DNA from: Diplonema japonicum
Lineage: Eukaryota; Protista; Euglenozoa: Diplonemea
Reading direction: 5' to 3'
Assembly: GCA_964019335.1 (NCBI GenBank)
Contig: OZ025741.1
Coordinates: 248,001 to 312,000, forward strand
Length of the DNA stretch: 64,000 bases
Shown: positions 11,536-54,078 of the stretch, one piece after another
Numbering within the stretch: position 1 is the first letter of the stretch
Layout: the number at the start of each line of letters is the position of its first letter
Notes under the pieces: model-generated
What the model was told of the DNA's origin: nothing
The model's database searches: none
The model's input: only the letters and a program-made list of their open reading frames with translations
Position numbers and translations under genes: made by a program

Positions 11536-11536
<1 letters not shown>
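7319..11536 (-). CDS. SPT16: FACT complex subunit Spt16; join(7319..7678,7726..7853,9067..11536), 985 aa
   Basis: N-terminal peptidase M24-like fold, GDFEAHENGFRF, FERVVQG|QSSFDAVFVMKDY continuing across a GT-AG intron, then YYE...FWTNILKEI and an acidic/basic tail. Exon phases are consistent. Confidence 0.93.
7890..9045 (+). mobile_element. Non-autonomous piggyBac-family transposon inside SPT16 intron 1
   Basis: Perfect 14-bp TIRs CCCATAAAGGACCG (7890-7903 and 9032-9045) with TTAA on both sides (7886-7889, 9046-9049). Frameshifted transposase remnants YWIVFDN, GTIRKTRK and a Cys-rich tail CTVC...CRDCNVAMC. Confidence 0.92.

Positions 11537-16256: not shown

Positions 16257-16257
<1 letters not shown>
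15190..16257 (-). CDS. OMA1: Oma1-like mitochondrial M48 zinc metallopeptidase
   Basis: NASCAPSGKIIV, HEIGH zinc motif, ESEAD, STHP; basic N-terminal presequence. Confidence 0.85.
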
Positions 16258-20547: not shown

Positions 20548-21186
20548 CTTTTTCTCGTTGTACCTTTATCGCCATCACCATGGCCAGTCTAACATCGTCG
20601 CGTCTCGAGTGCCAGTCAGGATTCTCGGCGAGCCTTCTTCTAAACTGTGAGAAGATCTTGGCATGGTTCCCCATGTCAGTCGAGAGCAACATCTCCACAA
20701 TGGTGTCCCGCACCTCCTTCTTCTGGTCGTCATTCAACGACGCCAAGATATTGTACTTAGGGTGCCTCATCATCTCAAAGACACAGGCACAGTGGTGGTT
20801 TTCAAGAATCGACCTTTTTTTTTTTTTTTTTTTTTTTTTTTTCTTCCCGTATACCTATCGTTATACAATATCCCAAGGTATGCTTGTGTTTTTGTGTGGA
20901 AGCTGTTGTTGAAGCCAGGATGGTCATAGTCGTGAATGCCAGCTGCTATGACTGCTGCGAACTCGTCTTCCTTCTTCATTCGCATCAGGCTGCCCATCTT
21001 ACCGGGGCCGATGATGTAGTGAGTGCACTGCAGAACATCTGCCGCGTGCGTTGCGTTATGGTAAGGATTGTCGTGATAACCCGCCGTCACCCCGAGCCAA
21101 AAATTTTTCAGGGTAACCGGGTCGATCGAGAATAGGGAACAGAGGTTGTATTTGTAGGTGAGGACCCACGCTGTTGTCAGAAGCGC

Positions 21187-21227
<41 letters not shown>

Positions 21228-22314
21228 ACGTACCTCCTTCAGTCAATTTGTCGAGATCGAATGGGTTGAAGTCAATCTCGTCGATGTTGTCCATGCATTG
21301 CAATACTTTCATTGCGATCTCCTTGTCTCCAGTGGTTTCCAGGATGCTCTGTATGTTCGGGTCCGTGGGGAGAATCTTCAAAGGTGACCGTTCCTGTGTG
21401 CTCTCAAACTTCGTTGTAAGGAGCTTCAACATCCCTTGATCACACGTTATCGTCGCGGGGTCATGTTCCTTCGCCCACTGGAGATGCTGGAACGGACGTG
21501 CCCCGCCTTCATTATACAGGCCGTCCAAATGATGGATAGCTTTCCCGTGAAGGCAGTATTTCTTCGCTTTTCTAACATTCTTTTCAATCCGTTCGACCTC
21601 TTCTGTTGCTTCGAGTTGGACTTGGTTCGCTTCACGCGCGTCTTGCCGAAGATTCTCAACCTTAGGGAAAATGAGCTCAATGGAGTTTAAAATATCGTCT
21701 GTTTTTGCCTCGCACAAATTGATGTTTGCTTCTGTCGCTTCAAGAAGGTCCTCCGAGGGCGCGCGTTCCCTCTTTCGCGACGCATAGGAGTCGAAAAACG
21801 GGAGGAAAAAATACGTGAATGTCAAGGACGATTCATTGCCGAAATTTGCGAGCTCGATGGGGAGAAGGAGGCGTTGATCTTTGCTTGTTTTTAGCGAGAT
21901 ATCGAGACGCCGCTTGTTCCCAGTTGTGGCGATTGCACGGGGGGGTTCGCCTTTAATGAAAGCTGATGTAAATGCGCGCCAAAATGTTACCCAGGAAACA
22001 TTAGCTGCGCCTGTAGCTTTCCAGTCTGCGATTTCTGAATCGGCCATTGTCTTCACCCAGACCGTGCCGGAGACATCTCTGCAGACAACGGTCAGACCAC
22101 CAAGATCGGTGTCAGCAGGGTAGGTTGCCAGGAAGTACACTTTCCCGTCCTGGTCGACCTCTTTCATGATTGGGGAGTTCATGTACCTTTCCTTCCCGGA
22201 TCTCGGGCCCGTTTCCTGTGCTTGGGGCGGGCTTCCTCGTCTTGTCGTCTTCTCCCCCACAACCTCCGTCCCGTCCGCCTTCGTCCTCGCAGGCTTCGTG
22301 GCCCCGCAACCCAT
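20203..22314 (-). CDS. Class I 3',5'-cyclic-nucleotide phosphodiesterase; join(20203..20505,20564..20813,20855..21188,21234..22314), 655 aa
   Basis: YHNATHAADV and HDYDHPGFNN are present. Splicing restores LYNDR|SILENHH and IK|MADISN; EFYTQGD and QISF follow. N-terminus MGCGATK suggests dual acylation. Confidence 0.92.
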
Positions 22315-22468
22315 TTTATACAACGGGGGGCAAAAAAAAGAGAGGAGGGGGGGGGTGTTTTATTTAATCGTGTTTTTTTTTATTTTATTTATTTTTTTTT
22401 TTTCGTAAACCGAAAAAAAAAAATCGGGGAGGGGGGAAGGGGGTGGCAGGGTGTTGCCTGTGTGTGTG

Positions 22469-23413: not shown

Positions 23414-26378
23414 CTAAAGATTACCAAACTCATCGCTCAACCGGCCACGCTGAATTTGTTTTTTTTTCCCCCTCTTTTTTTTTTTTTTTTTTTTTCCCCA
23501 AACAAAATACCTTTGCAGTCTCCTCTTCATTTGCTTGGAAGGATCTCTTACGGCTTCTCGAGGCCGGCTGTAATATTATCAATTATTGCATTTTTTTTTT
23601 TTTTTTTTAAAACCCTTCCCATCATACCTCTTGTAAAGCCGTATTTTTCACAGACTGGTCCACGCCAGCCCCAGACTGCTGCATGAACGAGGGAATGGGG
23701 TTCGGTGTCGAAGATTCCAGCGAAGCTATTTGGCTTAGTTTCCTCTGCCTTCTCCGCTCTTCCAACGTAGCACGTTCACCATCAGGCGTCCCAGAAGTCA
23801 TAGCCTCATGCCTTGCCGAAGACATCGTATGCTTTAAGAAAGAAGGGGTAGCTTGTCCCGGCGTCTTAGCCGCCTGCTGGGGTGTGGACGACTGTATCCT
23901 CGGGGTGTTCGGCCCACCCCTTGGCGTGTTCACACTGGTGGACTCCTCTTCGGTCTTCTTAAAAGCAGACCTGGAGCTCAGCGTTGCTTTCATGTATGAG
24001 GGTATAGCCCCCGGAATCATTGTGTTGGCACGCCTCATGGGACGTGGCGGATGCTGCTTCCTACTGTTTTGGCTGTTGTTCGGCGCAACACGAACCTGCT
24101 GCTGCGGTGCGGAAGGTGCGGGTCCTGGTATGCCAATTGCAGGCACGGTAGCTGCTGGTAGCGGTGCCACGTTTGGAACAACAGCAGGGGTCGTCGTGGG
24201 TGGTACGGGTGCCACTTGTACTGATGTGGACTCGCTTCCAGAGCTCATATTGGTGTCCCCGCTTTGGCTTCTCTTGTCCATGCCTGTTGACCTTCTTGGT
24301 TTCTCCAAGTAGTTGATGCCCAGCCCTACACTAGGGCGTGCCTTCTTCGTGCTGCCATCCGGTTCATGCATGCACACTGTCATGGTGGTCAGTGTGGTGG
24401 GGGTGAAGCCCTCGGGCATGGCATCTGCGTCGTGTTTAGAGGGTGTCAGGTGTTTTTTGTCAAGCTCGTCGTTGCTGAGCAGGTCCTGCACGCTGCTTGT
24501 TTCGACTATGTCTGACAGGGTCTTCCACTTCTTCCCCATCTCGAGCTGTTCCCTTATCCCCGCCACGTCCTTCGCGTTGCGCTGTTTCAACATTTCTTCG
24601 ATGTTTTTGTTGGTGTCCATCCATGATCCTTCCAAGTCGTGGTAGCGCTGTTCCCAGTACTTCTCGCGGGACTTGTGATATTGCAGCCAGGAGTCGGCTT
24701 GGAGCTTGTCCATCCTAGCGGAGTATGGGAAGGCAACGCGTTCGGTGTACCTCTGGTCGGCGGGGGTGAGGAAGGGGATCTTGTTTTTAAGCTCGAGATC
24801 TGCTTTGTTGATGTTTTGGAGGTCCGCCTTGGCGTTTGAGATTTCACAGTCAGCGACGGACACCTGCGACTGCATCATGACGATGTCGGCTTGAAGAGTA
24901 ACAATACGGACAGGCTCCTGCCCGCCTTTCGCTGCACTGGAGTGCTTCCAGCGAAGGATCTCCGCGTGGGTTTTCCTCAGTTTTAAAAGCGTCTCGCTCC
25001 GGACATGCTCGTGCTCCGCGATTTTCTTCGCCACCTCGTACTGGTTTGCGGCGACCCCGCGCATTTTCTCTTCCAGATCCAATGCTTCTGGCGACACGCT
25101 TTCCTCGGTGCCCTGTTTCCCCGCCTTTTCCATCAGAGCTTTCGACGCCGTTCGTTGCTCGGTCAGCTGTTCCTGAAGGTAAGCAACTTGGTTCTGCAGG
25201 TTCTCAATAATGGATTTGTACCTGCTTACGTGAGCGTGGACGGTGGTCTCGTTTTTCTTCAGCGTCACCTGAATGTTCTTAGCACGGTTGGCGTATTTCA
25301 GCGCGTTGTGCGTGTCCTCGTACGTCAAGAAGGAAGGCGATATGTTGGTGATCATGATGGTCTTGCAATTCCCGCCAAGTGAATCTTTCAACATCCTAGT
25401 GAGCTTCGAGTCTCTGTACCCAATGTATGAACCTGGTTTCGACGATGCAAGGGCATTGATAACGTTACCGAGAGCAAGGAGAGATTTGTTGATATTGGCG
25501 CCTTCTTTAAGACGGAGACCGCGGTTTTCAGTTGCAGCCGCACGTTCAGAACCAGCGAGATCGATGAGCGAGAGTTTTCCGACTTGAGATGTGGTGTCGA
25601 CACCAGAACCCTTGGGTTTCGTCTGCACGAGGAGCTGCAGGATGGCGTGGGAACGGCTTGATGCTTCGTTGACGTTGGTCTCTGCTTTCACGCGTTTCCC
25701 GTTTCCTTGTTCGACCAGACGCATGACATCTTTACCGTCTACTGGTTCCCACCATGTTAGCCCTGCAACTTGGCCGCCTTTTTCACCCTCTCTGAAATCC
25801 AGGGCACGCTGTTCTTCAGAGAGGAGGTCTCTTATCGTTTCGTTGTACACCTCGCTGTAGGAAAGTTGAAGGACTACGTCTTGGCTTTCCTTGTGAGATT
25901 CCGCCATTTGAAAAACTTCCGCAACTGCCATGGGGATGACCCCGGGCATGGATTGCTCGTCGCCCATCATTGTGTACGTCTTCCCAGCGCCGGTCGCTCC
26001 ATAGCAGAATACACTGCTGTTGTAACCGTTGAAGATGGACGGTAAGAGATCCTTGACCGTGCCGTTGAAGATGTCCAGTTGTGACGATGTTGGGCCATAT
26101 ACCCTATCGAAGACGTATGAGTGCGGCTTTCTACGTTTTGTGCCTGCATGGTGCGCGCTGTCCTCTTCTGGGTGCAGGAAGATGACGTCGTCCTGTACTT
26201 CTACAATGTTCTTGTGTTTTGACTGGGAAAGCTCAAAGGTGTTCTCTGGCCGCACTCTTATCGCAACTTCTATCCTCGCAGCCATGCCGGTGTCCTCAGC
26301 CGGTGGTGGAGGAACTTCCTGCTGCAAACCTGGTGACGGTTGTACCTCATGCTGTAGAACTTCTCCGTCCACTTCCAT
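23414..26378 (-). CDS. Kinesin-8-like (KIF18/KIF19/Kip3-type) motor; join(23414..23449,23511..23567,23628..26378), 947 aa
   Basis: YGATGAGKT, SSRSHA, LIDLAGSERA...RLKEGANINKSLLALGN, YEDTHNALKYANRAKNI. Two short terminal exons splice in phase. Confidence 0.88.
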
Positions 26379-27117
26379 GTTTTGTTGTTGTTGTTGTTTT
26401 TTTTTTTTTTTTTCTTTTTTTTTTTTTTTTAACCCGTTTTCAAAAGAGAGAATAAATGAAAAGAAACTCGATAAAATTTCAGTGTGCATGGGGGTGCTCA
26501 CTGTTCAGGTAGAAATGCACACTAACCGGTCACCGTTCTGCGGTTGCTGTCTGGTGCCTGCGGTGGCTGTTTGTCGCGATGAGATGGACGGCATCTGGGC
26601 GAGAAACATTGCTTTTTGGAGTCGTGCTAGGTAGGGGGGGGTTTGGCTCGAGGAGAAGAGTGGTCTCCTGTTTTAGCCGTGTGCCGTCGGGCCCCCAAGA
26701 TGTCGAAGGGTATGCACCCTTGATTTGGCGTTGGCGGGGAAGGCTGACCTTCCACAGCGTGCTGAGCATTTCTGGATGCGACCCAAGATGTATCGCATCC
26801 TTGCGGCCTTCTCCGTGAGCAGGTCTTGATCGTCGAAGAAAAAAAAAGGGAAGGGGGGAAAGATGAAGTAGAGCGAACGAGGAAAGAAAGGCTGCCTCAA
26901 AAAAAAAAAAGAATTTAAAAAAAAAGGAGAGGGGGGTATCTTCGCACCGCCCTCCCTTTTTTTATTTTCATTCTTTTTTTTTTTAAATATTTTTTTTTTT
27001 CCCTCCCATTGGGTAGGGAACGGGAAAAAAAAAAAAAAAGAAAGGCGACAAAAAAAAAGGGCGGAAAAAAAAAAAAAAAGTCGATGTCACAGAGCCGCAG
27101 GCCCCTAGAAGAAGGGG

Positions 27118-31540: not shown

Positions 31541-34500
31541 TTACTGCTGCTCCTTGGCTGACAAGTCCTCCTCAGCAGGGTACGGCATGACAGTCTCACG
31601 CACTACACGGTGGAGGACGAAGCACAACGAGATGGTGAGCATGCCCCAGGCGTAGATGGTGAAGGCCCAGGAGTAAGAAGGCCTGGTGATGTACTGCAGC
31701 TCACCGTGAAGAAGCGCCATGCCACCACCACGCGACTCCGAACGGGCAGATTCGTCCAGGAAGAGGCACCCGTAGGTGTTGGTAGACATCTGGTTGGTGT
31801 GCGCCCAGGCCGCAAGCACGAGGATCCACGCGAGGGTCAAAAACGCAGCCGACACAAAGATCATCTTCCCGAAGACAGCATGATGGGGCAGGAACGAGTA
31901 CAGGACCACAGCCACCATACCAATGCCAAGGAACAGTGTCCCCGACACAGCAAGCCCTGCAACGGTCTCCATGTCGCCCTCGAGGTCGCCCTTGGGGCAG
32001 ACATCGCCGATCTTGCGGCAGTTGTCGCCGCCTTCAAAGGTGGAAGTCTTGGGGAAGGCGCACTTCGGGGCGGAGAAGTCGGAGAGCGTCACGTCCATCT
32101 GCACAACGTGCACCTTCGAGTGCTCTGCGAAATCCCCAGACTCAGCCAGCACAACGGTGTGCGAGTTCGCGATGAACATCCCCTCCACAGAGCCGCCGGT
32201 GATCTTCTCCGCAGCGCCCTCCACGCTGTTCACGTCGAACACCTTCTTCGTGGTCACCGCCTTGATCCCTGCCGCAGCGAGGTTCACAGCAGGGTTCAGG
32301 GCCAACGCACCCCCAGCCACAACCACCCTCTCGATGGAGTCCAGCGTCGCATCGGAAGCAATGTTGGTACCGGTGGAGAAGTCGGCCTCCCTCAGGATTA
32401 CGGAGACGCCTGCGGGGCCGGACGTCGCGCGCTCCATCAGCAGAACCTTGTCGTCGCTCAACCAAGCAGCGGCACTGAAGCGCACGTCGGCCTGGGTGTT
32501 CGTGGCGTTCCTGAGCGAGGCAGGGTACTCACCCTCGGCGTCGCTGAGCAGCACCACCTTCTGCATGATGACAGAGGGGTTGGCGTAGTCGGTCACGTTC
32601 AACATGATGCAGCGCACGGCGTTGGAGTTCAGCAGCGTTGCGTCCCCACCGGTCAGGGGCGACTCAAGGCAGGCAACCACCTTGTCCTTGTCAGCGTTCA
32701 CAGCGAGAGAGCCGAAGCCCCTGCCAACGCGTCTCTGGCGGTAGATGGCTGGGATCACGGCCTTCACGTTAGCACCACCCCCAAGGGCAGCAGCGTCCGA
32801 GGTGTAGATGGCCTGGATCTCACCGGCAGCGTTCCAGATCGCGATCTCGGGACCGAACTGGTCGGCACCGATGAACATCCCCTTCCCGAAGGCCTGCACG
32901 TCGCCCATGTTCAGCCCGAAGCTGGCAGGGGTAGCCACAACGGTGTTGGCGGGGCAGGTAGCGACGGTCCAGCCGGCGGCACCCCCGACGCGGGTGACCT
33001 CGTTGTCGGTCGTCGAGAGGCCGGCGAGGACGTTGTTGCCGCTGTACTTCAGGTTCGCCCAGGAGTCGACGTGCACGACGGTAGAGGAGGCTTCGTTGGT
33101 GTACGTGTTGCCCAGCCTCAACTTCGCAACGGCGGGGGAGAAGCCCTGAAGGGCAAGCACGGTGGCGCCGTTGCAGTCAGCAGAAGGACCGCGGCCGGTC
33201 ATGGCGTACAGCTCACCGCTGCAGTAGTCGTAGGTGAGGCCGCTGAGGCCAGGGGCGTCGTTGCAGAAATCACCGGTACCGGTGGCGCAAGGCTGGCTGC
33301 AGTTCGTGCAGGTCAGGTCCGTGGTGAGGTCGGGGTTTACAGTTCCGGCAAGGGGCTGGGCAGGGAGCGTGTAGCTGGTGAGCTTCTTCTTGGAAGAATC
33401 AACGAAGTGGTTGTCGTGGGGGAGGACGTTCACGTCGCCGGAGCTCACCTCGTTGGCCAAGCTGAAGTCCCACGTAGCTCCGTTCTGCTCTTGCTCAAGG
33501 ACGTGGAAAGTGAAGCTTTTCAGGGGCTTCATGCACCTCTCGGCGTGTCCGGCCCTTGCCTTGCAGGAGTTGATCTGGGGGCACTCCACAGACCAAGCGT
33601 GCGACCTGCAGCCCGCCTGCGTGCACCTCGCCCACGCGTTGCTGTACACCTCATCGGACTCGTAACCGGCACTGCAGCTGAGCTCCAGTTCGGAAGCGCA
33701 CTGGGCAATGAAGGTGGCGTTGCAGTTCTGCGGCTGCGAGGCGAAGCTGTGGTCCTTCTTGAAGTCGTCGCTGCACATCTCCCAAAGACCAAGACCGAAT
33801 TCCTTCCTGCCCCTTTCCTCCTGTGCGTACCTCATACGCCTCCACTGCGAGGTGGGCAGGGCAAGGGTCATGGCAACGAACGCGAGGATGCACAGACCCC
33901 AGGCTCCCGCTGACTGAGGCCAGTCCGACACCGTTGCGGCAATCCTCTTCGCCTCCTCCTCCTTCAGCCTCATCTCCTCCATGTCAACCTTGTCCTTTTC
34001 CAGGTCACCGCCCCACAGCTGCATGAAGTTGGGGAGCTTCTTCCCACACAGCTCTTCGGCCCTGAGGATACTTCCCCTGGTGAGGAGGTCGGCCCTGTTC
34101 CTGCGGACCCAGATGAGGACGAGAATGCTGAAGACGATGATGGCGACAGGGACCCCGACGGCAACGAGCACCTCCCAACCAGCAATGGAAAGGGCGATGA
34201 CGAGACCGGGCATGGCAAGGAAGGCAAGCAGAATGTAGGCAACGGGGAACCAGCGGAGGTTGGCGGCGGTATCGCCCATGAACTTGGCGAGGGCGAGGGG
34301 CACGGGACGGAGGGGCCAGATCATGAACCACACCACTGTCCCGAGGACGTTGAAGAAGACGTGCTCCAGGGCAACCCTCATCCCAATCACGACGTTGTCG
34401 CTCGACAGGGCAGACAGCACACCGGTCACAGTGGTACCGATGTTGGCACCGTGCGTCAGGGCAACGAGCTTCTCAATGTGGATGAGACCGATCCCGACAA

Positions 34501-35788
34501 GGGGCGTCAGAGTCGAGGTGAAGACAGAGCTGGACTGCACAAGGATGGTGCACCCGGTACCGAAGATCATCAGGATGTAGTTGTCCAGACCACCGCACGA
34601 GCGCAGGATAGGGTGCTTGAAGTCGATGTTCAGGAAGTACCTGGTCCACGAGGCAACGCCACCCTTCAGCACGGACTGGAGCAGCTTCACAAGCAGGAGC
34701 AGGCAGGTGGTAAGCATGGTGAGGGACACGAACAGCAGCAGCACACCAGCGTCGTCGTCGGAGATGGGGGTGTCGCGGAGCACGTGACCGGACTTCTGCT
34801 TGATGATGGTCTTCTTCTCCAGCTTCTTAACCTCGTCGTTGGAGGAGGCCTGCGCGATCTTCTCGATAAGCTTCTTGTCAACAGACACCACGCGGCCGGA
34901 GGCAGGCTTCGTGATCTTCTTGATGAACTCCACCTTCTCACGCTTGTCAGTGCTCAGGTTCATCGAGTCCACAGCCTCACCAGCGAGCTCCTTGAGGAAA
35001 CCGGACGCAGCCTCGAGGGGGAGGAACATCCCCACGGTGAGCCAGTTGAACATGTCGTGGAAGACGGCACCGGTGAAGGCCCTCCTGTACTCGGCGGGAC
35101 TGTTCAAGTGAGCAATGGACACAATGGTGTTGGTGACGGAGGTACCGATGTTGGCACCCATCACAAGGTACGCTGCGTCCTCAACGCTGACAAGCTCCGC
35201 TGCCGCCATCGAGATGACGATGGACGTGGTGGTCGACGAGGACTGCATCAGCACCGTGGCGAGGATACCGATGGCGAGCCCTGCAACGGGGTTCGACAGC
35301 AGCTCGCTCTCACGGAAGGCCCTCCCGGAGGACTTCCCGCCGAGGATCTTGAAGGCGTTCCCCATGAGCCCGAGGGAGATGATGAACATGTACAGCACAC
35401 CCCAGATGCTGCAGAACTTCACGAAGTTCACCACAACAGTCTCAACCTTTTCCAGGGGGGTGAGGAACTTCCAAGGTGTGCCCGTGTCAGCCATGGCCTG
35501 CAGGGCCCACACGTCCCCCACCGTCTCGTACTCTGCCCTCGTCATGAGCTTCAGAAAGGCCTTCTCACACTCGGCTTCGCAGTCGAAAGGGTCCCCACCC
35601 AGGATGTCCTTCCCCATAGGGCACTCCCTGAACTTCTCGTAGTCCACGAAGCACGACCCGTGCACGTAGTAGCGGTCCCCTGCCTTCCATGCCTCGTCTG
35701 CCTTTGCCTCGTCGGGAATGGGCTCCGAGCTGAGCTGCTGCGGTGTCTCCCCCTGAGGGGTTTCTTTTGGATGGTCTTCTTGCGTCAT
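31541..35788 (-). CDS. SLC34-type Na+/phosphate cotransporter fused to a claudin/amastin-like four-TM module with an extracellular esterase-like-phytase domain, 1415 aa
   Basis: Two QSSS repeats (LMQSSSTTTS, LVQSSSVFTS), GANIGTSVTNT and GANIGTTVT. Then a TM with W...GLGLWEMC, ADQFGP, RGFGSLA, LESPL, VEG and three terminal TMs. Intronless, visibly GC3-rich. Confidence 0.85.
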   Translation of the reverse strand: MTQEDHPKETPQGETPQQLSSEPIPDEAKADEAWKAGDRYYVHGSCFVDYEKFRECPMGKDILGGDPFDCEAECEKAFLKLMTRAEYETVGDVWALQAMADTGTPWKFLTPLEKVETVVVNFVKFCSIWGVLYMFIISLGLMGNAFKILGGKSSGRAFRESELLSNPVAGLAIGILATVLMQSSSTTTSIVISMAAAELVSVEDAAYLVMGANIGTSVTNTIVSIAHLNSPAEYRRAFTGAVFHDMFNWLTVGMFLPLEAASGFLKELAGEAVDSMNLSTDKREKVEFIKKITKPASGRVVSVDKKLIEKIAQASSNDEVKKLEKKTIIKQKSGHVLRDTPISDDDAGVLLLFVSLTMLTTCLLLLVKLLQSVLKGGVASWTRYFLNIDFKHPILRSCGGLDNYILMIFGTGCTILVQSSSVFTSTLTPLVGIGLIHIEKLVALTHGANIGTTVTGVLSALSSDNVVIGMRVALEHVFFNVLGTVVWFMIWPLRPVPLALAKFMGDTAANLRWFPVAYILLAFLAMPGLVIALSIAGWEVLVAVGVPVAIIVFSILVLIWVRRNRADLLTRGSILRAEELCGKKLPNFMQLWGGDLEKDKVDMEEMRLKEEEAKRIAATVSDWPQSAGAWGLCILAFVAMTLALPTSQWRRMRYAQEERGRKEFGLGLWEMCSDDFKKDHSFASQPQNCNATFIAQCASELELSCSAGYESDEVYSNAWARCTQAGCRSHAWSVECPQINSCKARAGHAERCMKPLKSFTFHVLEQEQNGATWDFSLANEVSSGDVNVLPHDNHFVDSSKKKLTSYTLPAQPLAGTVNPDLTTDLTCTNCSQPCATGTGDFCNDAPGLSGLTYDYCSGELYAMTGRGPSADCNGATVLALQGFSPAVAKLRLGNTYTNEASSTVVHVDSWANLKYSGNNVLAGLSTTDNEVTRVGGAAGWTVATCPANTVVATPASFGLNMGDVQAFGKGMFIGADQFGPEIAIWNAAGEIQAIYTSDAAALGGGANVKAVIPAIYRQRRVGRGFGSLAVNADKDKVVACLESPLTGGDATLLNSNAVRCIMLNVTDYANPSVIMQKVVLLSDAEGEYPASLRNATNTQADVRFSAAAWLSDDKVLLMERATSGPAGVSVILREADFSTGTNIASDATLDSIERVVVAGGALALNPAVNLAAAGIKAVTTKKVFDVNSVEGAAEKITGGSVEGMFIANSHTVVLAESGDFAEHSKVHVVQMDVTLSDFSAPKCAFPKTSTFEGGDNCRKIGDVCPKGDLEGDMETVAGLAVSGTLFLGIGMVAVVLYSFLPHHAVFGKMIFVSAAFLTLAWILVLAAWAHTNQMSTNTYGCLFLDESARSESRGGGMALLHGELQYITRPSYSWAFTIYAWGMLTISLCFVLHRVVRETVMPYPAEEDLSAKEQQ

Positions 35789-36477
35789 TGTTTCTTTTAT
35801 TTTCTCTTAATAACCTGTCGGTGGGCGGGGTCGGGGATTTTATATAAATATATATTTTCTTTAATCTTTCGTTGAGAACAAGAAATAAAAAAAAGAAGAA
35901 AAAGAAATTTGTTTTGGTAAATTGCATTTGTGGCTGGTTGAAGAATGGTGTGAGAAAAAAAAAGGGGGGGGGGGCAGAGGGGGGCACGAGAAGGTCTACT
36001 TTTCTTTAAAAAAAAAAAAGGAGAGATAAAAATTATGAACGGGAAAGACAAAAAAAAGGGGATGGGGGAGAAGGAAAGAGGGAAGTAGAGAAGGGGGGAG
36101 GAAATTCTTTTGTCGCTCAAGCGGTGTTTTTATTTCCCCTCCTCGACCCACTACCACTAAGAAGGATGGGAGTTGCGCTCCACGTTCTAGCATGATTCCT
36201 CTTATCCAGACCGAGAGACCGGGTTAAAATACCCACTCACTGAGCACATTGTTTTGTACAAAAAAGAGGGGGGGGGGGGTGAGACTCTTCTTGTCTCTTG
36301 TATCCTTCTTATCCCCTTCCCCGCTTCTCCAGTCCCTTTCGCGGGGAAAGACAAAACATATTTAAAGGAAGTGAAAGGGGAGGAGCTACAGAAAGGGGAG
36401 GGGGGGGGAGGGGCCGTATAGAGCATGAAATGGTATCCCTACTAAAAACCACGAGCTGGTGGTTCGGCGGCAGAACG

Positions 36478-38788: not shown

Positions 38789-38790
<2 letters not shown>

Positions 38791-41503
38791 AGTCGAACCA
38801 GAAAACGAACAGAAACCCCCACAGCACGAGCGATAACAGCACCAAAAGTTCCATGTGTTGAAGCATGCGAGTCGTACGGGTGGAACGGAGCTGATCCCGC
38901 AGTGTGTGGCAGACGGGGGCGTGCTGGAGCTCCGTGGTCGAGGTGAGATGGAGGTCCTTACACTCAGTGGAGCAGTACGACACCATAAAGCACACAGTGC
39001 AGTCGATGAAAGGAGAATCGTCAGAGGAGGGGACGTACCGCTTGCGGCAGAAGGCACAGATCGTGTTTTTGGAGTTGGAAACGGTGCCCTCGTGAGAGGA
39101 GCGAATTTCAGCCCACTTCACGCTTTCTGGCACAGGCTCCCTTGTCGACATTTTATGAGCGGCAAGTTCATCTGCGAGAGACTGTGCCAACCTGCGTTTA
39201 GAGGCCTCTCGGGCTAGGTCGAACCGACGCCCGAATTCTTTATTGAACCTTGCGATGTGTGCGGAGTCCGCCTCCCAAGCCTCGACGAGCTGCTCGAAAC
39301 CCGCATTCTCCGTCTGATGGGCCAAGATGTTCGAGCAGAGCGCCGATGCTATCTCGTTATTCTTGCTGTCTCGCAGGACCTCGGTGAAAAAAACATCGTC
39401 TCTCGCCATGAGCCCCGCCGTGGGTGAATCGTACAGGGCAAGCCTCGAAAGAAGCAGCAAAATCGCTCGATTTTCAGACGGGAGCTTGCGTGCTTTCTCG
39501 ATCAGTTTTGGTAGAAAGTCGGGCGTGGCGGCGATGTCAGCCGCGATCGATGGAAGCAGCGCCACATCACACAGAATCTTAACCGCAGACGGGACGTTGA
39601 TAGTGGACCTGCACGAAACACCAGAATCATGGTGGAGCAGAAGCTTCGGCATGTCCACACCAGTGTCAAGCCCGCAACACCTCCAGAATATTGTCAACAA
39701 GTACCTATCGTCTGTGGCCGTGAATCTGGAAAGGCACCCTATCAAAACCCTGTATAAATCCCGTTCTTCGTCAAGCGCAGGTTCCGAGATGATCCTCCAA
39801 GCCGTGTCAAGCATCCACGGGCAAATCTCCGCCACTACTCTGTACATCTCTTTCGATTCCAACACATCGACCACACCGCCTACAACCAAACACCCGATCG
39901 GCACTGTGTAAAGACTGTCCTTTCCCGTTGTGATGTAAGCTTTGACCAAACCGACCAAATGGGGAAGGATCGCCTTGGCGGTGTTATGTTCGATGCTTTG
40001 TCTGTACAGCCCCATGACGCCCATGGCTGATTCGTTGAGAGGGGTTCTTGGTTCGGTTCGAGTTAGAATACCAGCTACGATTGGAAGGAGGGTGGTTGAC
40101 TTTTCCCTGAGGACGTACTCCTTGATGGTTTTATCGTTGGTATCTGCGGAGAGGGTTAGAGCGGTGAGGATCTGTTCGTACGCACCGTCATAACGAGGGC
40201 TCGACGTGAAGCTTCGCAGCAGGTCATCTACTAGAATATCCGTCCATCGCAGTGCGGGTACAGTTGCGTCATGGCACGGGAGCAGTGCAGACATCAACAC
40301 TGCTACGTTACAAGCTAGTTCCGGTGTGTTTATCACGATTTTCTTCCTGGCAAAATCCGGTATTACACCAACTATGGACCCCACCCCGACCAGTTCCTTG
40401 CAGCACATTTCACTGCTTGTTGCAATGTTGCCCAACACACCCGTTAGGTGAACCAACAACCCGACTTGCGATGTTTCGCTTAACAACAACAACCCAATAC
40501 AATGTAAAATCCGGTATTTCGGGTCCAATATCCGCGAAGAAGCGGTTTTCTGTCGTGAAGAAACGGCGAGTAAGGACCACGCTTCGACGGGGGGGGGCTC
40601 CAGACAGAATTTTTCGAGGGCGAGCGACTCCGCGACCGACGGCGCCAACGATGGCGACGAAGAGAGCTCCAACAACAGCAGCACCGCTTCGCGTTTTAGA
40701 ACATGGTGTGCATCTTTTGTACAAAACGCAATGTGGTTAAGACCCTTCAAGACCTCATCTAGCATTCCATCATCAAGAATAGGCATCGGCCGTTCATAGA
40801 ACGGCCGTAAAATCCCGCAAAACCAGTTTGAGAGGATACGTATCGCTAAGTGAACGTCCTCAACAGCGGTTTCCTGAAAGGTCCCGGTAAATTTTTGATG
40901 CGCTGCGAGCATTAAACCCAACACGCGTAGATCGGGTTGTTTGATGAGGGAGTGCGCGCCGAGAGAATTTGAAAAATGCCAGTATTTTCTCAGCACTGCG
41001 TTTCTCTCGTGAATGTCGGCCAGGGAAAGACGTGTTGCGAGATTGACCTCCGGGATGTTGTATGGAGCTCGTGGGACTGCTGAGCGTTTCCTTGCGGAAA
41101 GTACTGTCAACGATAAAATCTTGCACGCATCTGACATTAGCTGCGTTCGTCGAATCGAACAGTTTCTGAGCAGAGCCTCCATATCAATGGTCTCTCCACC
41201 GGTTTTTAAAACCTCTTGAACCACAAATTCGCTGACATTATCTATGACGAAATGGTACAGAATTCTGATGATTCCATCTACTGTTCTGTCGCTGCTGCTC
41301 TCCGACCAGTTGTCACCGCAGACCCCAGGTACCATCTCCCTCTCTTTCAAGATGTTCATCAGGTGTGACATTGCGTCTTGATCGAGCTCTGCGGGGTGCG
41401 CCACGGAGCTGCATTTCTTCTTGATTAGATTCACGAGATCCTCAACGCCCTTTACTTTCTTTTTTCTGTCCTGGGATTTTATCAAAGTGAGGCAGGGGTC
41501 CAT
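38789..41503 (-). CDS. ARM-repeat protein with MYND-type zinc finger and C-terminal TM anchor, 904 aa
   Basis: Leu-rich helical repeats; CAFC...CTVC...YCSTECKDLH...HAPVC; terminal LLVLLSLVLWGFLFVFW. Confidence 0.8.
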
Positions 41504-42128
41504 TCTCTCTCTTTTTTTTTTTTTTTTTTCTCCCTCTCCCCCCCTTTTTTTTTCTTTCGGAATTTTGTATGGTAATGAGGAAAGAAAAAAAAAAAAAAGC
41601 ACAGTGGTTGTGATATAGTCGAATAAAAGGTATAGGGAGAGGGGACAGTGCTCCTGGTTTAACTGTGGGTTTTTTTTTTGAAGTTGATTATTATTAACAT
41701 TCTCCCCCCCCCTTTTTTTCTCCTATTCTTCTTCTTTTTTTTTGAAAAAATTATTTTGGGGAGAAAAAAACTATCCTGGCACTTTTTTTTTTTTTTTTTT
41801 TTCTCGCGCTAAGCGGATTTTTAAAAAAAGAATTATGACCCGAAAAAAGCGTTGTTAAGTCTTGAAAGAAAACCCTGCTCATAAACTATCAACTAACTGC
41901 GCCAAAAACCCTCTCCCTGAACTCACGTTGCTTTTTCTTTTTTTTTTTTTTTAGAGAAAAAAAAAAAAAAACACAGCTTAAGAAAAATTAGGAAAACCAA
42001 AAAAAAAAAAAGAAAAGACCTCCCCCCTCCTTTTCCATCCCGGGTAATTGGAAAAGAAGTATGTAACAAAAAAAAAAAAGAAGAAAAAAAAAAAAAAAAA
42101 AAAAAAACCTCCCAAACAAATCTTTTTT

Positions 42129-42274
42129 TTAAGTCAATGAATAGCTGGAGACCCCAGTACTCGACAAAAAGATCCGGGAACAAAGCGAGCCGCGGTCGGC
42201 CGCGGGTATCAGAGCAGTTGGTGCCCTCCACTCCCACGAGATGTATTGGGTGCCGACGGAAGGGGTTTGGGGAA

Positions 42275-42307
<33 letters not shown>

Positions 42308-43617
42308 CCCTCCACATACAACGGGAACTTGTTCGGGGTCCACCAACACAGCCTCGTACTCCTCCATTTCCAGAACATAGGTCTGCCTGACCGTTCGCCC
42401 CCTTCCGATGAATTTTACCGGTTTGACATCCACGCCCAGTTTCTCGATCCCACGCTTCCTGACCGCGTCTTCGTGAGACTCGGTCTCATGAACATACCCC
42501 GCAGGCAGGCCGATAATACCTGGGAGGGACGAGTCATCACCCGGCCGTGTCACCGTCAACACCATGTTTTGATCCTGGTGTTTTTTTTTTTTTTCTTTTT
42601 TATTTCACTCTTCAGAAATTACTTCACGCACTGGGGGGCCCATTACTTCACGCTAAATCTCATTACTTCACGGTGAAATAATGGCCTGTTTTCCGTGAAG
42701 TAATAGGGGGTTTCCGTTAAATAATATGCCTCGGTAGGCCAATTTTTGCCTCGGCCCCAGGTTCAGCTCAATTGGCCAACTTTTGCCTCGGCTCAGTTCC
42801 AAGTTGGACTACTTTTTCCTCCCAATTTGCCCACTTTTGGCTAGGCCTTGTTCCCAGTTTCTGGGGGTAACTCTTCTGTGGGTAAGGGTAACTTAGTCAG
42901 CTTACCCAAGCTCCCCAAAAGACTTCAAAATACCGAAGCAGCAGAAGAAAAGGAGCCAGCGGCCGCGCCAGGTATGGGAAGGCCTGATTAGAGATGGTGA
43001 CAGTGGCAATGCCAGCGACAGCGGCAGCTCTTAGTCAACAAAAGGAGGAAAAACAACTTGTATTGTAACCTTTGTAACCCCTCTCTTGTTGTACCCCTTG
43101 TCACCCTGTTGTGCCCCTCGTGGTGAAGTAATTTCAGAGTGTCGTGAAATAAAACCACTTACCTACCGCCAAGTAATGCTTTACCGACCTCGAGGTAACG
43201 GTAAAGTCATTACTTGTTGGCAGTAAATAGCTATTATTTCACTCTTCCTCATTTTCTTCACTCACTAGGGGCCTCATTATTTAACGCGAAATGGCCATTA
43301 TTTAACGCAGGGCCCTCGTGCAAAAAATTCGGGAACTCGAGTTAAATAATGACTCATTATTTGTTGGCAATAAATAGCTATTTTTTTTTTTTTTTTTTTT
43401 TTTTCCACACCTTCGGGTTTCTGATCGCAAATGCAACTGCGTGCCGAACAGGGAGAACAGTCTGCACACCGGCGCCATTCGAGCACCCGCCTTCCCCTTT
43501 CAACGCGAAAACTAGCATCATGCATACTATTCCGATCGCCACAAAGATCAACCGTGAGCACAACGGTGTCTTGCTGGGAATAGACTGCTGTGTTGCCCCC
43601 CGCAGTAACTGGTGCAT
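42129..43617 (-). CDS. Nudix hydrolase with N-terminal signal anchor; join(42129..42275,42320..42574,43411..43617), 202 aa
   Basis: Splicing joins AVAFAIRNPK|DQNMVLTVTRP. Variant Nudix box GLPAGYVHETESHEDAVRKRGIEKLGV; C-terminal TQYISWEW...GSLCSR. Confidence 0.8.
42599..43380 (+). mobile_element. Crypton-like non-autonomous elements E (42599-43233) and F (43228-43380) in tandem inside Nudix intron 1
   Basis: IR pair 42599-42627/43124-43153; repeated ATTACTTCAC/GTGAA(A/G)TAA motifs; terminal hairpin ~43170-43217; TAGCTA at 43228-43233 and 43375-43380. Confidence 0.65.
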
Positions 43618-43729
43618 TTTCTTTTTAATTTTTTTTTCCCCCCTCCCCACCCCCCACACCGTGTCTGGATTGTGTTGTGGGGGGGTTGCGGGGGAAAAAG
43701 AAAAAAAAGAAGAAGAAAAAAAAATACAT

Positions 43730-44197
43730 TCAATACGCAATTTTTTGAAGAGATCTTTCAGTCTGGTTGATCTCCTTCCGTAGTCTGGCCGTTGTTCTTT
43801 GTCTTGTGAGTGCTTCTTCTGTGAGCTGTCGCTGTAGGAAGGCGTTCTCCGCGATCAGTAAATCTAAAGTGTCGTTGAGGTCTTCTGCAAGGTCTGTGGT
43901 GTGCTGGCATTGTGTGCAGCCTGCCTTGTCTTTCATAAGAGTGATGGTGTCTCGCATTTCTAGGTTGTCTGCCTCTAGCTGTCTCATTGTTTTGTGTTGA
44001 ATGGCGTTGCCTGTTGGGGATACCAGTTCGTAGCCCAGGTTGTGCTTGTCGCACCTCTTCAAGGCCTCCACCACAGCATCATACTCCTTGTCCATCCCCC
44101 ATGCTGCTCCCCAGGCTGCGCCCCCGTTGCTATCCTTTGCTACCGCAAAGGCTTTGTAGTTTTCTTTTGTCAAAAAGTCGTCGTAACTCTCTTCCAT
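43730..44197 (-). CDS. Hypothetical protein with DUF4189-like N-terminus and coiled coil
   Basis: YKAFAVA...WGAAWG...AVVEALKRC, followed by a heptad-rich C-terminus. Confidence 0.65.
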   Translation of the reverse strand: MEESYDDFLTKENYKAFAVAKDSNGGAAWGAAWGMDKEYDAVVEALKRCDKHNLGYELVSPTGNAIQHKTMRQLEADNLEMRDTITLMKDKAGCTQCQHTTDLAEDLNDTLDLLIAENAFLQRQLTEEALTRQRTTARLRKEINQTERSLQKIAY

Positions 44198-44521
44198 GTT
44201 AACATCTGTCTGGTACACTGCTGGCACGCGTGTAAGAAAAATAACAAAAAAAAAAAAAGAAAAGTGAGGGGAAACTTTTTCTGGGAGGGGGGGAAAGAAG
44301 AAGAAAAATATTTAAAAAAAAAAAAAACAGGGAGAGGGAACACTTTTTTTTTTTTTTTTTAAAAAGCTCTTCTTCTTGATCAAAAAAAAATACCAGGAGA
44401 AAAAAAAAAAAAAAAAAAACCCGAATCATACCCAAAAAAAAAAAAAAAAAAAAAAAAAAAAACACTTTCCCGGGAGTAGGAGGGGGGGGACAAAAGGGGG
44501 GGGGATAAATAAAAAAAAATC

Positions 44522-45053
44522 CTAAAGCCCTGCGAAGGAAGTGTCCTTCTTGGGTGCGGGAAGCCCGGTACCATAGTTGCTGGTAAGGCCGAACCCGGGG
44601 CGAGCACCGTCGACAGAGGCGTTGGGCTGTTTTGTTTTGAATATGGAAGGAAAAAAAAAGGGGGGGAAATACCTTAGGGATGAAGGGGTACACGGCACCG
44701 AACAGGACACCCACGGTGACGACGGTCCACGACTTGCGCTTGTTCATCATGGCAGAGAACTGCTGGGTGGTGATGTCCCACGGCCTACGGGTGGACCTCT
44801 GGTACAGAGATGCGGGGGGGAGGGGCTTGGGCACCTTCGCCTCTGCCGAGGGCATCCTGACGGGGTACGACGCGTAGTCCCCGAGAGTGTTAGTGTACAA
44901 CTTCAGGTTAGGGTTGGGCATCTCAATACCGAGGGGCTCCTGGGTGGTTTTCCCGTCTGCTGCAATGTGCGACGTAATGGACACGGGCCCCACAGTCTTG
45001 TTGGGCATCATGAAGGTGAGGTCAGGGTGGTGAACGCATTGGGTACCGGACAT
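44522..45053 (-). CDS. Hypothetical single-TM protein; join(44522..44626,44673..45053), 161 aa
   Basis: GC3-rich ORF; a 46-nt GT-AG intron joins FIPK|PNASV; one hydrophobic helix. Confidence 0.75.
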
Positions 45054-45111
45054 TTTATTATTTCTTTTTTTTGCCTCTTTTTTTTTTTTAGAATAGATAT
45101 CACCTGTGGTG

Positions 45112-45142
<31 letters not shown>

Positions 45143-47679
45143 AGTTTTTGGAGAAAAAAAAAGGGGGGGGAAACAATAGAAATATGACGGGGAATAGATG
45201 GTTGAAGGGAGTGGTCGAAAGAGAGAGGAAATAAAGGGAGTGGGGGGGAGAGACTACGCGCCACATCGATTTTTTTTTAAATTATCGGGCTTTAAAAAAA
45301 AAAAAAAAAAGTGTAAAAAAAGAGGGGGAGGGGAAAAAACATGAGGGAAGGAGAAGGGAGTGTGTGCATGTGGGGAGGGAAGAAAGTGGCCTTCGGGGGT
45401 GCATGCTCCCCCAAACCTTGTTTTACTTTTTGTTTGTTTTTGTTTTCCCTAGAGGACAGGATGTAGGAAGGGAGGAAAGTACCGATGAAGCAAATGAGTA
45501 AAAGAGGGGAGAGAGAGGGAATAATAAAAAAAAGGAGAGAAGGGGAGCAAGCAGAGGGAAGAACTGGGTGAGTAAAAATTTATAAAATAAAAAAAATAAA
45601 AAACAGAAAAAAGAAAAAAGAGCGCAAAGAGGAAAACGGGGGGTAACCTAGCAGTTCTATTTTAAGCTACTATAAAATCTCTTAATTCTTACTCCCAGGG
45701 GGGAAAAGGGGGGGGCATTTTTTTTTTTTTTACCGGGACTAAGTTCAGAGATTTTACAGTAAGTACTGCGCTGTACTGGGTACAGTGGTATTGTATTTTT
45801 TTTTTGTTTTTTTTTTTTTTTTTTTTTTTTTCTTTTTTAAACTTTTTGGAGCAAAGAAAACAAAGAAAAGATTCTTTATTTTCTAGTGGGGTATTCCTTT
45901 TTTTTTCTTTTTTTTTCTTTTTCTTAGGGATTTTCTCCCTCTTTTCTCTCCTTTTTCAAATAGTCATATAGGGATGGGGTAGGGGGGGGATAACAGTTAA
46001 CTTGTTTCTAGTAAGATCAGAGTTTTCTTTTTTTTCTTTTCTCTTTTTTTCCTCACAAACATTTATCGTTCGCTTTTTTTTTTTTTTTTTTTTTTTTTTT
46101 CTTCCTTTTCTTTGCCTCCCTTTCTTTTTTTTTTTCTTTCTTGTCCCCGGCTGCTGCAAAATATATATTTTTTTTTATTTCTAAAGAAAACACGTCACAA
46201 AGGAAAGGAATCAGCAAAACCGGAAGGGGGGGAAGAAAAAAAAAATAGCAAACGTCCAGGGAATACAGAAAAGGGCGGGCGGGTAGTGGGAGTGAGAAAC
46301 GAATGAAGAGAAAAAAAAAAGAAAATTGGAAAAAAAAAGAGAAAAAAAAAAAAAACTGGAAAAAATCTAACTGCTACATTCTTTTGAAGAATAGGGTACG
46401 GGGAGAAGGGGATAAAAAAAAAAAAAAAAAAAAAAAGTAGGCATTTAGCATTTGTATGAGCACACGGAACAAATCCTGAGACAGGTACTGCATGCCACCA
46501 ATACTCTTGTTCTTTTTTCTTTTTTTTTTTTTTTTTGTTCTTACAAGAAACTGAGTAGTACTTGTTAAATACAAAAAAAAAAAAAAAAAAATCAAAAAAG
46601 GAATTAGGTGAAGAGGCAGAAGAGAACACGTTTCATATGCTCCTCCTGCTGCAACGGGAGCCTGCCAAAGGCCCCGATAAATAGAAGCGGGGGGGTTTTG
46701 ATCACTATGACGGGGGGGGGGGGGGGGGGTTATTGGAGGGAAAGCCCCTTCCGATCGGGTATCGCACATTTAAAAAGAAGGAGGGGAAAAAAAAAAGAAG
46801 GAAAAAAAAAAGGAGGGGATAAACATCTCTATCGAGGGTTTCTCTCACTGCCATTACGACCAGTAGAAAAAAAGAATGACTGCCTACGGGAGGAATCGAC
46901 TTCTTCTTCTCCTTCAGAGACAGCTCTGGGGACAAGCGGCAGCCTCAAGGATCAGTTTTTTTGTTTTTCTTTTTTTTTTCTTTTTTTTTCCCCCCTTCAA
47001 CCCAATATTGCATTTTTCGAATTAGAAAGAAAAATGGAAGAGAAAAAGAACTGGAGCACAATAGGTTGAACTGTAAAAATAAAATAAAAAAGAGAGAAAG
47101 AAGGGGGGGGGGGGGGGGAGAACAACTCTTTTTTTTTTTTTTTTTTTTTTTATAAGTTCACTTTCGCAGTTAAACAAGAGGGAACAAGGGAGAAATAAAG
47201 AAAACAGGCAGGGAAGGGAAGGGGTGTGGGGTATGATGGATAGGTGCCCTCCATACTTGGCTAAGCTATTAGCAGGGAAAACAAAGAGGGGGGGGGGGGG
47301 GGGAGAAGAATGTAAGGAGGGGGACTATCCCCCACCCGCTTTCTTCCCTTATTATTATTTTTTTTTCTTGCCTTTCCTTCCGCATTTAGGGCATAGTTGT
47401 GCACTGGTAAAAGACAATAGAGAGAAAAAGATTTTTTAAAATAAAGAAAAAAAAAATGCCTTTCTGTTTCACCAAGCTACCCTTTCTCCCCCCCCCCCCC
47501 CCCCCCCTCTCTCTCTCTTTCAAAAAGAAAAAAAAATGTTAAGAAGAGGTAAGGTGCTTCTACCCCGCCTCGCTATCTGACAAAGACATTGCCACATCAT
47601 AAGAAATGGAATGAATTAGGGGAAAAATTCGAGAGACAGACAAGGGGCGACGGGGGAATAAAGGTGAAGAGAAGCCAGG

Positions 47680-47724
<45 letters not shown>

Positions 47725-48215
47725 CCATCTCCTTTTTAAATGTTTTAAGTAAAATAAGTATTGTGTAAGTGAGGGGTTTTTAAAGAAAATTCGATAAGGT
47801 TTTAGTGCGCAGGGTGTGCTCACTTGTAAGGAAAAAAAAAGGGGGGGGCAAAGTCTTAATAAAGAGGAATGTAGAACCCATCAATTTCATTGGATGCTCC
47901 TCATGTATGTTTTGTTTTTCTGTTTTCCCTTTTCTCTCTTCAGAGTTCCAGGGGGGATGGGGATTAAAAAAAAAAAAAAAAAAAGGAAAAAAAACATAGT
48001 GATTGGGTTTTAAAAAATAAAGGGGAAAGGATAAAGAGAGAGAGAGAGAGAGCTGGGTAAAAGGCTAAAAGAAATTAAAAAAGAAGATGGGGGTGTGTTC
48101 CTCGTCAGGAGTTCATGCACCTTCCCTTTCTCTTTTTTTTTCATTCCATCTTTACCCCTTTCCCACACTATCTCCCAATAACGGTGCCGTCAAGCCTAAG
48201 AAAGCAAAAAGGGGG

Positions 48216-48246
<31 letters not shown>

Positions 48247-48478
48247 GAACCTTCCGACCTTCTCTTAGAGTTTCTTCTTCTCTTATTCTTTCTCGTTTTT
48301 TCGAGAAGGGGGATTTGGGGGCATTTTTTTTTTTTGTAGTTTTTCTTTTTTTAAAAAAAAAAATTCAAATTCCTCCATTTTTTTCTTACGCTTGTTTTTT
48401 TTTGGGGGGGGGAGAGGCTTTTTTTTTTGTATCACACACAAACTTCCCAACGGGAGGGGAGGGGGGAGAGCTAACTCT

Positions 48479-53907: not shown

Positions 53908-54078
53908 CCTCGCCTCTTCAAACCTATATGGTGATAAAGGTTTGAAAGGAGTAAAAAGAACATGAAAAACTTCTGGCGCTTGTTTGTTTGCGCACCAATC
54001 AGGGGAGGGGGAGAGGAAAAAGCGGCACACCAGTTCACGACTACACTTATTGATAAAAATCCCCGGCCAGAAATCATG

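Follow-up and report, generated by a model that had tools for sequence, protein, structure and literature searches.

A predicted claudin/TARP-fold tetraspan and a PF13449 propeller joined in one chain to an SLC34-type phosphate transporter in the diplonemid Diplonema japonicum

The window, a stretch of 64,000 nucleotides (nt) from Diplonema japonicum (GenBank assembly GCA_964019335.1, contig OZ025741.1, positions 248,001 to 312,000 of the forward strand), carries at 31541-35788 on its minus strand a single open reading frame (ORF) of 1415 stop-free codons. The encoded protein begins with the core of an SLC34-type cotransporter for Na+ and inorganic phosphate (Pi), which is followed by a linker of 58 amino acids (aa) and by a module with four transmembrane segments (TMs), the tetraspan. 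The first outer loop of the tetraspan holds a Cys-rich helical subdomain and a β-propeller of the PF13449 family, and relatives in which this propeller is missing, of a type known from dinoflagellates, are called short forms throughout. The features of the gene are as follows.

31541..35788, minus strand: the whole ORF, 1415 aa plus the stop codon
35874..35985, minus strand: two polypyrimidine tracts (35947-35985 and 35874-35909), then AG, 85-200 nt upstream of the ATG (sequence pattern)
35441..35788, minus strand: predicted cytosolic N-terminal extension, aa 1-116, conserved in the consensus of the diplonemid fusions
34091..35440, minus strand: SLC34 / NptA-type Na+/Pi cotransporter core, aa 117-566 (Pfam PF02690; match to SLC34A2a)
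35234-35245 and 34526-34537, minus strand: the two QSSS motifs, each repeat also with GANIGT
33917..34090, minus strand: charged linker, predicted cytosolic, aa 567-624, joining the transporter in frame to the tetraspan
33848..33916, minus strand: tetraspan TM1, aa 625-647 (hydropathy; helix 10-30 of the model)
33509..33847, minus strand: start of the outer loop, aa 648-760, with claudin-type strands and signature, then the Cys-rich helical subdomain common to the short forms
33773-33796, minus strand: aa 665-672 of the signature P..QW..(M)RY...GLGLWEMC, with residues invariant in the homologs
32045..33532, minus strand: segment absent from the short forms, aa 753-1248, made of the propeller, the stretch in front of it and a piece behind it
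32087..33394, minus strand: PF13449-family β-propeller, aa 799-1234 (Pfam, own profile, fold match)
31601..31969, minus strand: tetraspan TM2-TM4, aa 1274-1396 (hydropathy; model helices 653-683, 690-718 and 756-784)

The observation made at window 31541-35788 in an earlier note, which was written from the letters of this DNA alone, is confirmed. The frame is uninterrupted over all 1415 aa, as the note had it, and every motif that it named is present; its coordinates are off by no more than a few codons. QSSS occurs at aa 182 and again at 418, GLW at 667 with C672, ADQFGP at 975, RRVGRGFGSLA at 1019 and LESPL at 1041, while VEG stands at both 1189 and 1201 and SYSWAF at 1371. By its hydropathy, the chain divides into a multi-TM core (aa 117-566), one TM (625-647), an extended hydrophilic region and, between 1274 and 1396, three further TMs. 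The strong bias in G+C content at third codon positions (GC3) that had been described is equally plain, with 0.82 for the ORF and 0.78-0.84 for each of its parts against 0.52-0.62 in ten neighbouring ORFs. The central claim of the note, that an SLC34 transporter, a tetraspan and a PF13449-type ectodomain lie in one chain, is upheld by Pfam searches and by alignment at the level of hidden Markov models (HMMs) and of single residues.

In the transporter half, PF02690 (Na_Pi_cotrans) is matched in two stretches at 1.1e-28 (100.4 bits, threshold 29.1), in agreement with the earlier description of a complete SLC34 core with two QSSS repeats, and aa 1-566 align with the solved structure of SLC34A2a (9z60) at an E-value of 9.4e-109. 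Both repeats have their QSSS and GANIGT motifs unchanged in all 23 homologs compared. Judged by its family membership, this half would be a working Pi importer, most likely one coupled to Na+. The N-terminal extension in front of it (aa 1-116) carries a four-Cys motif, Y.HGSCFV.YE.F..CPMG.DI...C...C, which matches no Pfam family and which is common to all diplonemid fusions and to a plain SLC34 paralog in the same genome (L009); in the short forms the extension is short or absent and the four-Cys motif is missing. The linker behind the core is 44-71 aa long in all homologs.

The same full layout recurs in at least five diplonemid genera; it is found in D. japonicum transcripts, in five genes of D. 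papillatum, in Rhynchopus euleeides and R. humris, and in the hemistasiid Namystynia karyoxenos, so that the check for this architecture in diplonemid transcriptomes gave a positive answer in Diplonema, Rhynchopus and Namystynia sources alike. The D. papillatum genes (DIPPA_19218, 19196, 19221, 23782 and 07814) are all annotated just as “hypothetical protein”. Outside the diplonemids, short forms are known from the dinoflagellate-type protein P0002 of Prorocentrum cordatum and from metagenomes (P0020-24 and P0201-208, which are 55-64% identical to P0002). A short form has 800-865 aa; its SLC34 core and linker are followed by TM1, by about 115 aa of Cys-rich loop and by TM2-4. P0002 itself, with 2167 aa, comprises nearly three tandem short-form copies and is probably a tandem gene array merged in one gene model. 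The earlier statement that the SLC34 proteins known so far stop shortly behind their last TM does not hold, as the short forms carry the same tetraspan without a propeller. The relation between the two forms is visible in BLASTP alignments of the C-terminal half of the window protein with the short form P0204, which fall into two pieces, aa 623-752 (8e-17) and aa 1249-1398 (2e-15). Fifteen residues in aa 623-752 are invariant across long and short forms; together with the two-piece alignment this means that the fusion of transporter and tetraspan is common to two distant protist lineages. The propeller segment (aa 753-1248) is, on these alignments, probably a later insert specific to diplonemids.

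The tetraspan has four TMs with a large first and a small second loop, according to both hydropathy and an AlphaFold2 (AF2) model, and both of its ends would lie in the cytosol if the SLC34 C-terminus does. The sequence behind TM1 (aa 645-672) reads ...LPTSQWRRMRY...GLGLWEMC and resembles the claudin signature. Residues W649, R661, G665, G667, C672, P686, C689, C705, Y715, C727, C736, H748 and C752 are invariant in the 23 homologs. The second outer loop is short, with two strands and C1341, and the tail includes SYSWAF. The AF2 model of the C-terminal half of the window protein (mean predicted local distance difference test score, pLDDT, of 76; predicted template-modelling score, pTM, of 0.70) contains four long helices; TM1 is followed by four short strands, and the second loop has two more. 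In the AF2 model of the short form P0204, the tetraspan reaches a pLDDT of 85-95, and this model was used for the comparison of folds. In Foldseek, nearly all of ranks 1-50 are TARP chains or complexes of AMPA receptors with TARPs (gamma-2, -3, -5 and -8), together with GARLH4, and the TMt values of the top TARP chains are 0.66-0.80. An independent VIA-wide search with the same tetraspan gives TARP gamma-7, -8 and -3 (Z 15.7), the Cav1.1 gamma subunit (Z 15.5, root-mean-square deviation (rmsd) 1.9), MP20 (Z 15.2, 166/166 residues aligned), GARLH4 (Z 14.6), claudin-15 (Z 13.9, 171/181 aligned) and claudin-19 (Z 13.3). The top eight (Z 13.9-15.7) all belong to one superfamily, and nearly the whole of the target is covered, the outer sheet included. 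In its own model, the C-terminal half of the window protein has the same elements. The models thus assign the tetraspan to the claudin/PMP22/TARP fold. By analogy, the fold match suggests a tethered auxiliary subunit.

The hydrophilic stretch between TM1 and TM2 contains the domain that gave rise to the phytase-like label. Pfam reports PF13449 (Phytase-like) at 2.7e-13 (50.9 bits against a cutoff of 27.6) over aa 847-1214, and an HMM of our own, built from 64 standalone members, matches at 6e-71 over states 28-432 of 439, which corresponds to one complete domain; the resemblance to the PF13449-type family that had been noticed by eye is thereby substantiated. A phmmer search against 1.8 billion representatives yielded 198 relatives. 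By contrast, PF02333 (3-phytase, the β-propeller phytase proper) has no Pfam match at E-values up to 10. The predicted propeller fold of the loop is borne out as well: residues 181-628 of the model (aa 797-1244) fall among β-propellers in both Foldseek and VIA-align, with all top matches being propellers. The closest is the C-terminal domain of YjiK (3qqz, Z 19.3, rmsd 3.0, 231/243 aligned), followed by glutaminyl cyclases (Z 17), NHL domains (about 15), and DFPase, PON1 and Drp35 (about 13). Within this assembly PF13449 is found only inside SLC34 fusions, the count being a lower bound.

The residues of the propeller tell a different story from its family name. The polar positions considered here are those conserved at 90-96% in the 64 standalone members, and they are numbered after our own HMM. 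The Asp, Glu and Asn positions D86, D170, E172, E187, N233, E237 and D409 are occupied in the window protein by G865, N960, G962, Q977, G1022, G1026 and S1217, respectively, and S191 and R204 by E981 and I994. The flanking structural motifs (T.RGP, G...G,.RGF., P, R1059 and EG) align unambiguously. In every SLC34 fusion examined, most of the nine family residues are missing, and what replaces them differs between lineages. The acidic set is wholly or nearly retained in the non-fused diplonemid proteins P0025 (three domains), P0032, P0029 and P0027 (domain 2) and in bacterial members. Retained in the clade of the window gene are D1033, R1059, E1119, E1153, E1202 and D1219, and the only residues of the propeller that are invariant among fusions are G989 and W1109. 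As most of the conserved Asp/Glu/Asn set is lost, the domain would bind rather than hydrolyse; it is probably a non-catalytic binding domain and not a phytase. The earlier proposal that the ectodomain binds or hydrolyses organic phosphate is accordingly split: nine replaced polar residues speak against hydrolysis, and binding is left as a possibility.

An active enzyme has nevertheless to be considered, namely a surface phosphoesterase or phytase which would free Pi from organic phosphate beside the mouth of its own transporter. The domain passes the PF13449 threshold and spans the whole family HMM, it is under purifying selection, and its E1119, E1153, E1202 and D1219 are in place. Its relatives have ties to phosphorus scavenging, as one PF13449 member (P0034) is fused to a PhoA-type alkaline phosphatase and a Nodularia member, which bears the annotation of an atypical alkaline phosphatase, shows about 45-fold induction (log2 5.5) under phosphorus limitation. 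The class of atypical alkaline phosphatases, marked by four D/E-rich conserved motifs, consists of metal-activated enzymes: a recombinant dinoflagellate representative with conserved D/E motifs is activated by Ca2+, Mg2+ or Mn2+ (PMC6723241). The link from PF13449 to this class (PhoAaty) rests on the annotation of the one Nodularia gene, no other source being at hand for the activity of canonical members, and no named dinoflagellate alkaline phosphatase is among the relatives of the propeller. The replacement of the Asp, Glu and Asn positions by G, N, G, Q, G, G and S argues against activity, and since the replacements vary by fusion lineage, no alternative chemistry is conserved either; moreover, the propeller has hardly any residues that are invariant among the fusions. 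This explanation is unlikely, and a propeller that binds is the preferred reading of the domain.

The 62.5 Mb assembly holds at least six full-length paralogs, L001 (the window gene), L002, L003, L004, L005 and L006, of which L006 lies only 36 kb from the window gene. L002 (G000:C94:83797-88038) is located about 195 kb away on the same contig, and its coding sequence is 99.6% identical to that of the window gene. The flanks of these two genes agree at 70-80% in the first 600 nt or so behind the stop codon; farther out, and upstream, they have no relation to each other, which suggests a homogenisation of the coding sequence alone, by gene conversion, and not a duplicate produced in the assembly. 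A further locus (L009/L010, G000:C77:266202-267695) is a plain SLC34 gene of about 505-519 aa with a core that is 56% identical and with neither tetraspan nor propeller. Between paralogs, the ratio of nonsynonymous to synonymous substitution rates (dN/dS) is 0.05-0.08 in the SLC34 core, 0.10-0.15 in the linker (two closest paralog pairs) and about 0.20 in the propeller. Across all parts it ranges from 0.05 to 0.21 and nowhere comes up to 1, so that purifying selection acts on the entire chain and on the joint as well. Identity between paralogs is 79-97% in the SLC34 core and 30-84% in the propeller, the part with the fastest divergence; that the propeller is still constrained fits a diversified binding function.

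Binding of another kind would be at work if the claudin-like module and the propeller served chiefly for adhesion to, or recognition of, prey, particles or cells, with Pi transport being secondary and merely co-localised. Claudins mediate contacts, NHL and YjiK-like propellers are often binding domains, and the ectodomain is the part that diverges fast among paralogs. The best structural matches of the tetraspan are auxiliary subunits of channels and not junctional claudins, the tetraspan is present in short forms that have no propeller at all, and the most conserved part of the protein is the transporter core, all of which makes an adhesive main function rather improbable when set beside a tetraspan and propeller that serve the transporter.

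Among the D. japonicum Trinity isoforms, P0176 (1417 aa) matches the window protein with an identity of 99.6%, and it does so in each block of 100 residues. The identity runs from end to end and therefore the assembled transcript spans the whole ORF; the genome is by the same token that of D. japonicum or of a strain nearly identical to it. Other Trinity isoforms of D. japonicum (P0001, P0175, P0177 and P0178) are block-wise mosaics of the paralogs L001 and L003, so that transcriptome-derived sequences of the fusion family need care. Polypyrimidine tracts, defined as at least 18 pyrimidines in 20 bases, occur in both flanks and nowhere within the 4.2-kb ORF; the region 35874..35985 upstream of the start codon is a possible trans-splice acceptor by its sequence pattern. 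The frame and the assembled transcript indicate that the gene encodes a single polypeptide.

Genes of Euglenozoa are transcribed polycistronically and their messages are trans-spliced, which raises the question whether an internal trans-splice site, or else proteolysis, could yield two products, a transporter and a tetraspan-propeller protein. Assembled transcripts could come from precursors and would then be compatible with this scheme. The continuous frame, the purifying selection on the linker and the uniform GC3 are difficult to reconcile with it, as are the lack of polypyrimidine tracts in an ORF whose flanks have them, transcripts with the complete ORF in four genera, and the same fused order in distant lineages including the dinoflagellate-type short forms. 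Two separate products are thus very improbable, and a single chain is assumed in what follows.

The topology of this chain can be predicted from its transporter half. The C-terminus of SLC34 proteins is cytosolic, and in the window protein an RRNR motif stands directly after the last SLC34 TM. With the SLC34 part ending in the cytosol, TM1 of the tetraspan would run outward. In the predicted topology the linker would lie in the cytosol, and the first tetraspan loop, which has about 625 residues, some 21 of them Cys, and carries four N-glycosylation sequons, would face the cell exterior or a lumen. This loop is built in two layers. The first is the Cys-rich helical subdomain common to the dinoflagellate-type short forms, and the second, in diplonemids only, is the inserted PF13449 propeller, in which the fold and the structural Gly, Pro and Arg residues of the family are preserved. 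The tetraspan would probably act on the transporter as TARPs and Cav gamma subunits do on channels, that is, stabilise it, traffic or target it, cluster it or tune it, and the loop would display the non-catalytic propeller for the binding of a ligand or partner. Taken together, the protein is read here, with a probability of roughly 0.6, as a Na+/Pi importer with a tethered auxiliary subunit of the claudin/TARP fold, the loop of which displays a non-catalytic binding propeller. The analysis demonstrates the architecture, the folds, the loss of residues, the conservation, the purifying selection and a full-length transcript, and from these Na+/Pi transport, the outward orientation, the non-catalytic status and the auxiliary role are inferred.

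The orientation of the loop admits a second location. If the protein resided in an internal membrane, such as that of a food vacuole, lysosome or acidocalcisome, the Cys-rich loop and the propeller would be luminal and the transporter would export Pi from digested prey. The outside of the cell and a lumen are not distinguishable by topology, diplonemids are phagotrophs, and at least six paralogs whose ectodomains diverge fast (30-84% identity) would suit this reading. No targeting signal has been identified, and the characterised members of SLC34 work as importers in the plasma membrane, where they are powered by the Na+ gradient, a large one in sea water. An internal site is doubtful for these reasons, and import at the cell surface is preferred.

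Several points weigh against the reading of a tethered auxiliary subunit with a dead propeller and have to be set beside its support. The claudin-fold match was obtained with the model of the homologous short form P0204 and not with that of the window protein, and helical bundles reach a Z-score of about 13 by chance. At the level of sequence families, Pfam gives the window protein a Claudin_2 match of E 0.07 (13.3 bits against a cutoff of 29.1), confined to the TM1 region. None of PF00822, PF13903 and PF06653 rises above threshold, no claudin or amastin model is matched above threshold by any of the 23 homologs or three short-form fragments, and the amastin family PF07344 has no Pfam match at E-values up to 10 in the window protein or the short-form fragments. 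The neighbours of the short-form tetraspan in a protein language model (0.83-0.89, with an amastin neighbour at 0.86) provide a lead only. Of the “claudin/amastin-like tetraspan” that had been proposed for this module, the claudin fold and the W...GLW..C signature stand, and membership in the claudin or amastin family does not. As to the propeller, the four retained acidic positions (E1119, E1153, E1202 and D1219) make a reduced or altered site possible. Sequence searches of the PDB, with the C-terminal half as well as with a profile built on canonical PF13449 proteins, gave no solved relative. As neither a structure nor a mapped active site was found for the family, the lost residues can be called catalytic by conservation only. 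The evidence on the ends of the mRNA and on the lack of an internal processing site, finally, is indirect and comes from the sequence and from an assembled transcript.

No description of an SLC34-tetraspan-propeller fusion was found in a search of the literature, and the short forms were likewise undescribed there; in public databases the fusion proteins appear solely as unnamed or “hypothetical” entries. All three parts are of known kinds, an SLC34 transporter, a claudin-fold tetraspan and a PF13449 propeller. It is their combination, and especially a predicted claudin/TARP-fold module on a secondary transporter, for which the literature searched has no description. Few heterotrophic protists of the ocean are as diverse and abundant as the diplonemids, and their phosphorus acquisition is almost unstudied. 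Up to now the claudin/TARP-type fold has been familiar from helper subunits that are separate from the animal ion channels they serve, and the fusion offers a handle on the roles of such tetraspans outside animals and on their use by secondary transporters. It also carries a warning for annotation: the attractive label “phytase-like” is probably wrong here, as it most likely denotes a catalytically dead binding domain, and marine metatranscriptomes could miscount such genes as hydrolases of organic phosphorus. A more far-reaching idea, which is speculative and less likely than not by a wide measure, is that tetraspans of the claudin/TARP fold are ancient, pre-metazoan auxiliary subunits for solute carriers and channels. 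The diplonemid SLC34 would then be a ligand-gated transporter or transceptor in which the dead-enzyme propeller senses a phosphorus compound or a particle outside the cell and the tetraspan passes the signal on to activity, clustering or turnover.

Around the fusion gene, all ORFs of at least 330 aa in the window (1-64000) are on the minus strand, except those antisense to the fusion gene and to 62884-63999, a bias in keeping with gene clusters that run in a single direction, such as other Euglenozoa have. The neighbours recognised by Pfam are the following.

9017-11536: SPT16
15190-16257: M48 peptidase
20770-22323: piece of a cyclic-nucleotide phosphodiesterase
23622-26501: kinesin
50977-54030: Rsm22

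The ORFs at 4746-6539, 12068-13219, 38789-41602 and 44199-45266 have no Pfam match. The region 42000-49000 of the window has a GC content of 0.38-0.46 with a strong positive GC skew (up to 0.25), and it is dense in homopolymers of A and T of 26-43 nt and in T-rich and A-rich short repeats.

Among known systems, SLC34 (NaPi-II) and bacterial NptA proteins (PF02690) have two inverted repeats, each with QSSS and GANIGT, as does the window protein, which adds to them the diplonemid-specific N-terminal Cys motif and about 850 C-terminal residues with the linker, four TMs and the ectodomain; the solved SLC34A2a chain comprises only 646 aa. The dinoflagellate-type short forms have the SLC34 core, the linker, the tetraspan and the Cys-rich subdomain in common with it, and differ by the absence of aa 753-1248. 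With the PF13449 family the window domain shares a full-length profile match, the propeller fold and the motifs T.RGP,.RGF. and SPL; unlike that family, it has nine conserved polar residues replaced and sits in the loop of a membrane protein instead of being secreted. The YjiK / SdiA-regulated domain (3qqz, PF06977) is the best structural match to the propeller, yet it has just 13% identity, and Pfam places the window domain in PF13449 and not in PF06977; we know of no function for YjiK, so this match gives no functional lead. The tetraspan, finally, has its counterparts in TARPs (stargazin), Cav gamma-1, GARLH4/LHFPL4, MP20 and claudins, which combine a four-helix bundle with an outer sheet from loops 1 and 2 in the way modelled here. 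In contrast to the members of the claudin/PMP22/TARP group, loop 1 of the window protein is expanded by the Cys-rich helical subdomain and, in diplonemids, by a propeller of about 440 aa. Whereas the TARP-type subunits associate in trans with a channel, the tetraspan of D. japonicum is fused in cis to a secondary transporter.

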